Origin: Hypanus sabinus
Lineage: Eukaryota
NCBI RefSeq assembly: GCF_030144855.1
Contig: NC_082729.1
Location: forward strand, 34,038,001 to 34,102,000
DNA: 64,000 nucleotides
Direction: 5' to 3'
A program made the translations under genes and the position numbers. This document shows positions 35,006 through 37,459 of the stretch, one piece after another. The notes beneath the pieces are model-generated. The model made no database searches. It saw only the letters and a list, made by a program, of their open reading frames with translations, and had not been told where the DNA came from. Every line of letters starts with the position of its first letter. Position 1 is the first letter of the stretch.

Positions 35006-37459
35006 ATGGTGAGTGCGCTAGTGCGGTGCATCGGGAGCGGGAGCGGGGACTGGGCAGTGCATGTTTGCGGGGACGAGAAGGCGGAGTGAACCCGGCGATG
35101 GCAGGAGGAGAGTGCACTGAGAGAATGCGCAGGAAAATCTGGTCAGTGGTTCCCAAATGGCGAACACCGGTGGCGAAGGGAAGGCAAGAGTGTATGAATT
35201 GCAGAGGTGGGTGGGACTGACCTGACACATTGGGCCGCTTCATGGAGTTAATCCTGATTGGATAGAGCTCAGTGCGCGAATGGGGCGAGGGCGCTCCGGA
35301 CAATGACATCTGGAGATATGTTGGAATTATTCTAGAAATATCGGAGCAAACAGATCGGGAGTGCACTTCTGGAAAAGATTTCATTGTATCTTAATATCAC
35401 ACGGTTGTATGTTGCCTTCCTTGCAGCGCGAGTGTATCTCAATCCACATCGGCCAGGCCGGATGCCAGATCGGTAACGCTTGCTGGGAACTGTACTGTCT
35501 GGAGCATGGCATCCAGCCGGATGGACAGATGCCGAGTGACAAGACCATCGGAGGGGGCGACGATTCCTTCAACACCTTCTTCAGCGAGACGGGGGCGGGC
35601 AAGCACGTTCCGCGGGCCGTCTTCATCGACCTGGAGCCCACCGTGGTCGGTAAGGCCAGCGGGCATTGAACTCTGATCTCGCGCATTTAATAGAGACTGT
35701 GTTCAATTCGCCCGTTCTCTACTTCCTCTCTCCCCACACAGATGAGGTCCGGACCGGCACCTACCGGCAGCTCTTCCACCCCGAGCAGCTCATCACGGGC
35801 AAGGAGGACGCGGCCAATAACTACGCGCGGGGCCACTGTTCCATCGGCAAGGAGATCGTGGACCTGGTCCTGGATCGCACACGGAAGCTGGTACGTTTCC
35901 AAGCGACTACAAATCATCGTCGGGCGCCCCACGCTCACCTCTCCCACTGTATCCAAGACCGTATGCGTCTCTGAGTTCTGCTTCGCAACCCCAACTCACC
36001 GGCTGGTCCAGGATTCACAATGTCGCAGCTCCCGCTTGCAGAGAAACTCGTGGCGCAATCTCCCTTGGCACCAAGAACGGGCGACAAGTTCACCTCTTTT
36101 ACCTTTTCTTTCCTTTGAAGACACTCTCAAAAGTCAGCCGCTCTTTAACACGTTTCCCCTGACCCATTCCGTAACTATCGGATATATTTCACCTTATGCT
36201 CGCCCACACGGCATTCCCCCGTCCATTACTTTCCTCTCGTCCCCTCTCCGCTCAACCAGCTGTATATTCTTTCGCCGCAGGCGGACCAGTGCACGGGGCT
36301 GCAGGGGTTTCTCATCTTCCACAGTTTCGGGGGCGGCACCGGCTCGGGCTTCACCTCCCTCCTCATGGAGAGGCTCTCCGTCGACTACGGAAAGAAATCC
36401 AAGCTGGAGTTTGCCGTCTACCCGGCGCCCCAGATCTCTACCGCCGTGGTCGAGCCCTACAACTCGGTGCTGGTCACCCACTGCACCCTCGAGCACTCGG
36501 ACTGCGCCTTCATGGTGGACAATGAGGCCATCTACGACATCTGCCGGCGGAACCTGGACATCGAGCGCCCCACCTACACCAACCTCAACCGGCTCATCGC
36601 GCAGTTGGTGTCGTCCATCACGGCGTCGCTGCGCTTCGACGGCGCCCTCAACGTGGACCTGACCGAGTTCCAGACCAACCTGGTGCCCTACCCCCGCATC
36701 CACTTCCCGCTGGCCACCTACGCGCCCCTCATCTCGGCCGAGAAGGCTTACCACGAGCAGCTATCCGTGGCCGAGATCACCAACGCCTGCTTTGAGCCGG
36801 CCAACCAGATGGTGAAGTGCGACCCCCGCCAGGGCAAGTACATGGCGTGCTGCATGCTGTACCGCGGAGACGTGGTGCCCAAGGACGTGAACGCCTCCAT
36901 CGCCACCATCAAGACCAAGCGCTCCATCCAGTTCGTGGACTGGTGTCCGACCGGCTTCAAGGTGAGGCCCACCCGAGCCTGAATACATTCCCCGCATGCA
37001 GTTTATTTTGTCTGTCCGCGCAGTTTTAAACCGTCCCAGGGAAAGTCTGCCAGTTGTGCTCGCTTCACGAATAGGCAGGCACCAACTGAGCAATAGGATA
37101 TTATGAGGTGGAATGAGTTGGTTGAAATGAGGTTATAATTGATGCAAATTTATCTCCCACAGGTGGGCATCAACTACCAGCCCCCGACCGTGGTGCCCGG
37201 CGGCGACCTGGCCAAGGTGCAGCGCGCCGTCTGCATGCTGAGCAACACCACCGCCATCTCCATGGCCTGGACCCGGCTGAACCTCAAGTTCGACAAGATG
37301 TACGCCAAGCGGGCCTTCGTCCACTGGTACGTGGGCGAGGGACTGGAGGAGGGGGAGTTCCAGGACGCGAGAGAGGACATGGCCGCCCTGGAGAAGGACT
37401 ACCAAGAGGTGGCGGTGGACTCCGCCGAGCTGGACAAAAGAGAGGAAGAGGAAGAATAA
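35006..37459 (+). CDS. Alpha-tubulin copy B, 5 exons, 450 aa (TUBA3/TUBA8-type exon structure, divergent isotype)
   Basis: Exons 35006-35008, 35427-35649, 35742-35890, 36281-36961, 37163-37459, all GT-AG; MRECI start, GGGTGSG, ends [13 protein letters not shown]. Confidence 0.95.

Follow-up and report, generated by a model that had tools for sequence, protein, structure and literature searches.

Mapping of exon peptides by tblastn onto a 64,000-nucleotide stretch of the Hypanus sabinus genome (NC_082729.1, positions 34,038,001 to 34,102,000; this whole stretch is called the window below, and all coordinates are counted from its first letter) revealed an array of alpha-tubulin sequences, consisting of four gene copies, A to D, and one stray exon 5 (Table 1). 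Our analysis centres on gene B and particularly on the segment at 37163–37459 of the forward strand, which the first-pass annotation of this DNA had assigned to a divergent alpha-tubulin isotype. This segment is exon 5, stop codon included, of an intact five-exon alpha-tubulin gene; an AG acceptor lies directly 5' of it, and its translation runs uninterrupted from VGINYQPP to DKREEEEE over 98 residues, followed by TAA. The complete product of gene B has 450 residues, and every intron is bounded by GT and AG. Upstream of exon 1 there is a TATA-like CATAAAG at ~34944, with CCAAT boxes at ~34826 and ~34902, and alignment of the upstream regions showed these elements to be common to genes B and C.

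Exon 2 of gene B scored 62.5 bits against Pfam PF00091 and exon 5 scored 29.4 bits against PF03953 (Tubulin_C; cut-off 26.6), while the skate orthologue P0044 matched both domains, Tubulin and Tubulin_C. Up to residue 437 the protein aligns to canonical alpha-tubulin free of insertions and deletions, and it is collinear with solved alpha chains. With these Pfam domains and the alpha landmarks present, gene B is a member of the alpha-tubulins (Tubulin/FtsZ superfamily). Processed or decayed pseudogenes were considered for genes B, C and D and ruled out by their open frames, four GT-AG introns and conserved promoter. The GTP loop GGGTGSG, the K40 loop and the MREC start, which had been described earlier as intact, are so in these three genes; in copy A the GTP loop reads GGGTGTG through S147T.

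Residue numbers follow a HMMER alignment of exon 5 to the Tubulin alpha-1B chain from PDB (3j8x and others), in which query residue 1 corresponds to V353 and the canonical chain reads AIAEAWARLDHKFDLMY and GMEEGEFSEARED opposite the exon 5 motifs. Exon 5 differs from it by E386M, A389T, D392N, H393L, L397K, M413L, S419Q and E420D, with A385S in addition in genes B and C. Further upstream in the protein, all four copies A to D carry GHCSIGKE (Y108C, T109S), SVLVTHCT (I188V, T190V, T193C) and DPRQGKY (H309Q). The motifs and residue numbers put forward in the first-pass annotation for exons 3 to 5 thus all hold in the alignment and in the copies of the window, and so does its observation that helix 11 (H11) loses acidic residues and gains a lysine, the net charge of this helix moving from -1 in the canonical protein to +2. 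Six changed H11 positions (385, 386, 389, 392, 393 and 397) share one helix face, opposite W388, L391 and F395, and only 1.6% of the possible six-position sets are clustered as tightly on a helical wheel; exposure of the changed residues was judged from published contacts and this wheel. Placement on the outer surface does not extend to every change: L397 is counted among the intra/interdimer interface positions in a preprint on a mutational scan of TUBA1A (bioRxiv 10.1101/2025.09.29.679168).

Relatives were sought with exon 4 in its open frame, the C-terminal 81 residues of skate P0044, and exon 5. The combined signature, AWTR-x-N-x-KFDKMY and GLEEGEFQD-x-RED together with GHCS, VTHCT and PRQGKY, was found in RefSeq and GenBank gene models of ~15 elasmobranch species, so that the isotype, whose taxonomic range had been left to a homology search, is not private to this genome. 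These species include the skates and sawfish Amblyraja radiata, Leucoraja erinacea, Rhinoraja longicauda and Pristis pectinata, and the sharks Heterodontus francisci, Chiloscyllium plagiosum, C. punctatum, Stegostoma tigrinum, Rhincodon typus, Scyliorhinus canicula, S. torazame, Carcharodon carcharias, Cetorhinus maximus, Heptranchias perlo and Pristiophorus japonicus. The database names of the signature-bearing proteins are generic ("tubulin alpha chain-like", "alpha-1C-like", "alpha-8-like" and similar). None of the best hits bearing the signature came from outside the elasmobranchs, which does not by itself prove its absence from holocephalans. Our literature search on the elasmobranch isotype, its motifs or chondrichthyan detyrosination returned nothing relevant, and no paper was found that describes the isotype as an already characterised one.

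The five-exon structure of the window genes recurs in Amblyraja and Leucoraja, and the Leucoraja protein P0037 shares 97% identity with gene D. At the skate loci L001 (Amblyraja) and L002 (Leucoraja), neighbouring copies are arranged in tandem or head-to-head at distances of a few kb. One 90%-identity cluster, that of P0044, comprises 36 members, most of them A. radiata genes located on a single 52.9-Mb contig; skates carry dozens of copies, far above the four of the window.

In an IQ-TREE phylogeny of 45 rows by 450 columns, covering 12 named elasmobranch species and the window's three genes, all motif-bearing proteins formed one clade with support of 100/100, and gene D grouped with skate orthologues (100/96). 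A long-branch subclade contains both sharks and the sawfish, which indicates that several paralogues of the clade are older than the shark/batoid split. Placed closest to the clade, with moderate support (91/84), was a canonical elasmobranch paralogue found in sharks and batoids, the P0195 cluster (RefSeq "tubulin alpha-1C/-3 chain-like"). The start of its tail is similar (DSAELD...), but it keeps AIAEAWARLNHKFDLMY, GMEEGEFSEAR and a tail ending ...DSAELDREEY, and the P0195 gene (locus L003) lacks the phase-0 intron between K352 and V353 (TGFK/VGIN) that is a feature of TUBA3/TUBA8-type genes and is present in the window genes, at the two skate loci and in bison TUBA3E (L004). The bison gene resembles the window genes in having five exons as well as this intron, and its exon 4 is 94% identical; unlike them, however, it retains canonical H11/H12 and a terminal Tyr, and it is not adjacent to the clade but sits near the base of a tree in which the alpha-tubulin backbone is poorly supported and TUBA8 and TUBAL3 are not among the rows. 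Judged by sequence comparison, the signature-bearing proteins are an old, monophyletic, elasmobranch-wide alpha-tubulin subfamily, tandemly amplified and generically annotated.

Ratios of non-synonymous to synonymous divergence (dN/dS) were calculated by the Nei-Gojobori method over codons 1–437. Between the window genes and those of Amblyraja and Leucoraja they amount to 0.03–0.09 at a dS of ~0.35–0.5; within the window they are 0.055 for B versus C, and 0.19 at a dS of 0.15 for B versus D. These values indicate that the clade signature is maintained by strong purifying selection, and together with the intact genes and the 100/100 clade they bear out the existence of a divergent isotype. The case for selection on the motifs stands on the low dN/dS and not, as originally argued, on their sharing between two subtypes, which common descent (across the ~15 species) and gene conversion explain.

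Gene conversion between subtypes has taken place inside the array. Genes B and C differ at three residues, and genes B and D at 25 of 450; nucleotide identity is 92% for B and C, and 95.8%, introns included, for A and D. Gene C is a mosaic, its exons and most of its introns being B-type and its intron 3 D-type, and genes C and D align continuously through exon 3, intron 3 and exon 4 with 96.4% identity over 997 bases. The dS between B and D is, moreover, lower than the 0.40 that separates D from its skate orthologue, and both observations lead to the same conclusion. It could be argued from this, and from the presence of a pseudogene and a stray exon, that the whole array is decaying without any special function, its copies being kept alike by conversion alone. 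We regard this as highly implausible, since the cross-species dN/dS largely refutes it, promoters and splice sites are conserved in the three intact genes, and sharks, skates and a sawfish have these residues in common, with sub-lineages that are older than their split.

Copy A combines a premature stop (C305 to TGA at 19841–19839) with the altered GTP loop and a frame-shifted tail; it is a young pseudogene whose splice sites are still intact. The stray exon 5, on the same strand as gene B, has an intact AG acceptor and degenerate motifs.

Table 1. Alpha-tubulin genes, gene fragments and other open reading frames (ORFs) of the window.
Feature	Position	Strand	Remarks
Gene B	35006..37459	+	Intact
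Gene B, start codon	35006..35008	+	3' end of exon 1, ATG/GTGAGT; exon 1 is a short leader
Gene B, exon 2	35427..35649	+	RECISIH...LEPTVV; K40 loop intact; Pfam PF00091
Gene B, exon 3	35742..35890	+	Contains GHCSIGKE (Y108C, T109S)
Gene B, exon 4	36281..36961	+	Ends TGFK, then gt donor
Gene B, exon 5	37163..37459	+	Codons 353-450 and TAA; H11, H11', H12, tail; AG acceptor 37161-37162
Gene C	43794..46069	-	Intact, B-type; ATG 46069-46067; exons 45584-45362, 45268-45120, 44972-44292, 44090-43794
Gene C, intron 3	44973..45119	-	D-type
Gene D	57326..59827	+	Intact, second subtype; ATG 57326-57328; exons 57661-57883, 58022-58170, 58318-58998, 59531-59827
Gene D, intron 3	58171..58317	+
Copy A	18872..21011	-	D-type pseudogene; 5' end meets N run 21013-21141
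Lone exon-5 copy	38568..38849	+	Degenerate; in-frame stop VGINC*PP; 1.1 kb downstream of gene B
Retroelement-like ORFs	39391..40630	-	Two ORFs; probably decayed LINE fragments
Retroelement-like ORF	5534..6166	+	Short ALKBH8_N-like Pfam match; probably decayed LINE fragment
454-codon ATG ORF	6700..8064		Rejected as a gene

Retroelement-like ORFs lie between the tubulin genes. The two on the reverse strand gave no match in a Pfam scan, and the one on the forward strand gave its ALKBH8_N-like match with E = 1.4e-9; all are probably decayed fragments of long interspersed nuclear elements (LINEs). The 454-codon ORF was rejected: it translates a tandem repeat with PTLHSN/SIPIPL units and has no Pfam match.

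Comparison of 34 clade members with 86 other alpha-tubulins, in which a position was called diagnostic when the residue conserved elsewhere is nearly absent from the clade, yielded 18 diagnostic positions (9, 108, 109, 177, 188, 190, 193, 275, 309, 386, 389, 392, 393, 397, 413, 419, 420 and 427), nine of which fall within 383–433 (binomial P = 7e-5). At some of them a single new residue has taken over, namely C108, S109, V190, C193, T389, K397 (L397K in 33 of 34 members), L413, Q419 and D420. At others the old residue is lost and its replacement varies within the clade, with M, L, G, V or S at 386, L, I, V or M at 393, and Q, H, M, S or T at 309. The two new cysteines (Y108C and T193C) are fixed across the clade, alongside T109S and T190V. 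In the VASH1 structure a single surface patch includes both Y108 and E196, so that Cys108 and Cys193 may be neighbours; if they are, this would hint at compensatory packing, a redox site or a metal site.

The first-pass annotation had read these changes as a specialised microtubule surface. What can be upheld of this reading is that substitutions cluster, under selection, on the exposed side of H11 and in helix 12 (H12). That they adapt the microtubule track to kinesin, dynein or classical microtubule-associated proteins is, on the other hand, improbable in our view. M413L, S419Q and E420D do lie in or beside H12, the main motor-binding helix, H11–H12 have been named as kinesin-binding regions (PMC4383081), and the charge reversal of H11 would fit such a role. 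Yet the residues on which motors critically depend are the ordinary ones. An alanine scan in yeast showed alpha R403 and E416 (vertebrate R402 and E415) to be critical for dynein, and E415 (vertebrate E414, in the EEGE loop) for kinesin ATPase activity (PMC4298687), and R402, E414, E415 and E417 are all unchanged in every copy of the window. M413L should matter little because N255 of kinesin bonds the backbone of M413 (PMC4383081); E420D keeps the charge, and no H11 change is named as a motor contact in the motor papers cited here.

Several of the changed residues are, by contrast, named contacts of the enzymes of the tyrosination/detyrosination cycle, an overlap on which the earlier annotation was silent, as it was on the missing terminal Tyr. 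In the crystal structure of TTL with tubulin, R51, H54 and R66 of TTL engage in His-Arg stacking with αH393, αR390 and αH309, and hydrogen bonds are formed with αE433, αE207, αE386 and αR308 (PMC3563685). Binding was strongly reduced by R66E, which affects the partner of αH309/αE386, and by R51A/H54A; the TTL mutants tested lost 20–95% of their activity, R66E was inert in neurons, and the tail peptide alone was tyrosinated 50-fold less efficiently than the dimer (PMC3563685). On the side of the vasohibins, VASH2-SVBP contacts the microtubule at E433 (site 1), at H393/E386 (site 2), and at Y108/E420/E414 of alpha-tubulin in the neighbouring protofilament (site 3), and alanine mutants at each of these sites almost abolished activity (PMC9750192). 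VASH1 contacts helix 12, helix 11 (interface 2) and a patch with Y108, E196 and E414 (interface 3) (PMC7449697); the residue-level vasohibin contacts with E386 and H393 used here are those of the VASH2 study.

Genes B, C and D have replaced the TTL docking residues through H393L, H309Q and E386M, joined by E433Q in B and C, with R390, E207, R308 and P175 kept, and the vasohibin docking residues through Y108C, E386M, H393L and E420D, with E414 kept. The pattern extends across the clade: E386 and H393 are lost in 34 of 34 members, Y108, H309 and E420 in nearly all, and E433 is Q or H in 12 of 34, B and C included. Five of the 16 named TTL/VASH contacts (108, 309, 386, 393 and 420) are among the 18 diagnostic positions, against 0.66 expected, although the hypergeometric P = 2e-4 comes from a post hoc test and is indicative only. 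The changeable residues at 386, 393 and 309 are as expected of a docking site released from constraint, to judge from the alignment.

The second feature concerns the C-terminus. A terminal Tyr or Phe is present in 0 of 34 clade members; the tail closes with ...DKREEEEE in B and C and with ...DKRAEEEE in D, that is, with four or five Glu behind a basic pair. In a well-supported shark and sawfish subclade (100/98; P0150, P0153, P0154, P0155, P0156 and P0158), tails have few acidic residues (e.g. ...LDSMLEKGE and ...LNDLAGLLA; DSRYLDSMLEKGE, SSYLNDLAGLLA), which is unusual for alpha-tubulin and would remove most glutamylation sites. The closest parallel to the tails of the window genes is provided by TUBA4A-type proteins, which likewise encode no C-terminal Tyr, have a tail of consecutive Glu and resemble detyrosinated tubulin from synthesis; these are made without Tyr and are then tyrosinated by TTL. 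They have no basic pair (DKR/DRK) of the kind seen in the elasmobranch tails, and, in contrast to the clade, outgroup alpha-tubulins without a terminal Y/F keep all six residues Y108, H309, E386, H393, E420 and E433.

Because two independent features coincide, the missing Tyr and the loss of docking residues for both writer and eraser, we propose, with a probability of roughly 0.5, that these genes encode an alpha-tubulin genetically fixed outside the tyrosination/detyrosination cycle. TTL would need to dock on the globular body via αH393, αH309 and αE386, and VASH1/2 would need αH393/αE386 together with Y108/E420 of the neighbouring protofilament. The isotype would thus be made without tyrosine, TTL would act on it poorly even though it ends in -EE, and vasohibins would find in it a poor docking partner, so that microtubules in which it is abundant would behave like tracks that stay permanently non-tyrosinated. 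Tracks of this type bind CAP-Gly proteins weakly, respond less to kinesin-13 and are favoured by certain kinesins. The residues of the motor footprint (R402, E414, E415 and E417) would stay as in ordinary alpha-tubulin, and the newly fixed K397, T389, Q419, D420, L413, C108, S109, V190 and C193 would represent an added constraint, imposed by a partner or by lattice geometry. The predicted outcome is similar to that in detyrosinated and delta-2 tubulin, with an exposed C-terminal Glu and, as for delta-2, no return to the tyrosinated pool; those states, however, are produced on ordinary isotypes by VASH/MATCAP and CCP enzymes, whereas in the elasmobranch isotype it would be written into the gene itself and safeguarded by the loss of the residues on which the enzymes dock.

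Several observations weigh against this proposal. The step from replaced residues to inaction of TTL and VASH is inferred, and some TTL binding may remain, since the contacts R390, P175 and E207 are kept in the clade, R308 is mostly kept, and E433 is retained in the D subtype. The same surface is also touched by other proteins, and residue R1528 of the CAMSAP CKK domain lies near H393. In the overlap test, post hoc as it was, surface residues are likelier both to vary and to serve as contacts. All motif-bearing proteins among the homologue hits were genome gene models and none came from transcript contigs, which constitutes weak negative evidence. Finally, the fixed K397, T389, Q419, T190V, T193C and V275L fall outside the TTL/VASH contact lists, and the strict conservation of such off-contact changes points to a gained function rather than mere loss.

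One form that a gained function might take is a change in the polymer itself, affecting its stability, the geometry of its dimers or protofilaments, or how many protofilaments it has, for instance in a specialised stable array such as a sperm manchette or axoneme. TUBA3 genes are testis-enriched in mammals, and bison TUBA3E has the K352/V353 intron in common with the window genes. The near-complete fixation of L397K would also fit, as human TUBA1A L397R is reported to be an interface variant with low assembly, which in simulation increases the twist of protofilaments, and TUBA1A H393D to be dominant-negative and microtubule-depolymerising (bioRxiv 10.1101/2025.09.29.679168). However, that preprint relies on simulation and on over-expression in human cells, with different residues (R not K, D not L), and an effect on the polymer would leave the missing Tyr and the hits on Y108, H309 and E420 unexplained. 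As the sole explanation we therefore consider it unlikely, although a lattice change or a new partner remains a live rival, or a second layer, to the tyrosination-cycle proposal.

The tyrosination cycle, a part of the tubulin code that has been studied extensively, controls the loading of CAP-Gly proteins and the activity of kinesin-13 as well as error correction in mitosis, the growth of neurons and the mechanics of cardiomyocytes, and, to our knowledge, all known vertebrate alpha-tubulins, TUBA4A included, are thought to remain TTL substrates. The shark/batoid split dates back ~300 million years. If the proposal is true, a natural isotype lacking both the Tyr and the two docking sites would amount to an evolutionary experiment of ~300 million years, one that would tell which residues TTL and VASH recognition truly need, and it would supply a ready-made "non-tyrosinatable" tubulin for reconstitution work. 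Should it fail, the elasmobranch proteins would still constitute a lineage-specific isotype that is well defined and in which unusual changes (L397K and two new Cys) have become fixed at positions invariant elsewhere. More tentatively, the sequences suggest that part of the "tubulin code" may be hard-wired in sharks and rays, the choice of isotype, in place of enzymes, setting the tyrosination state and K397, T389, Q419, D420, C108 and C193 adding a new surface for a partner or lattice geometry unknown in other vertebrates. With a fixed isotype of this kind, and dozens of copies of its genes in skates, one would further have to ask in which elasmobranch cell types such microtubules are required in large amounts.

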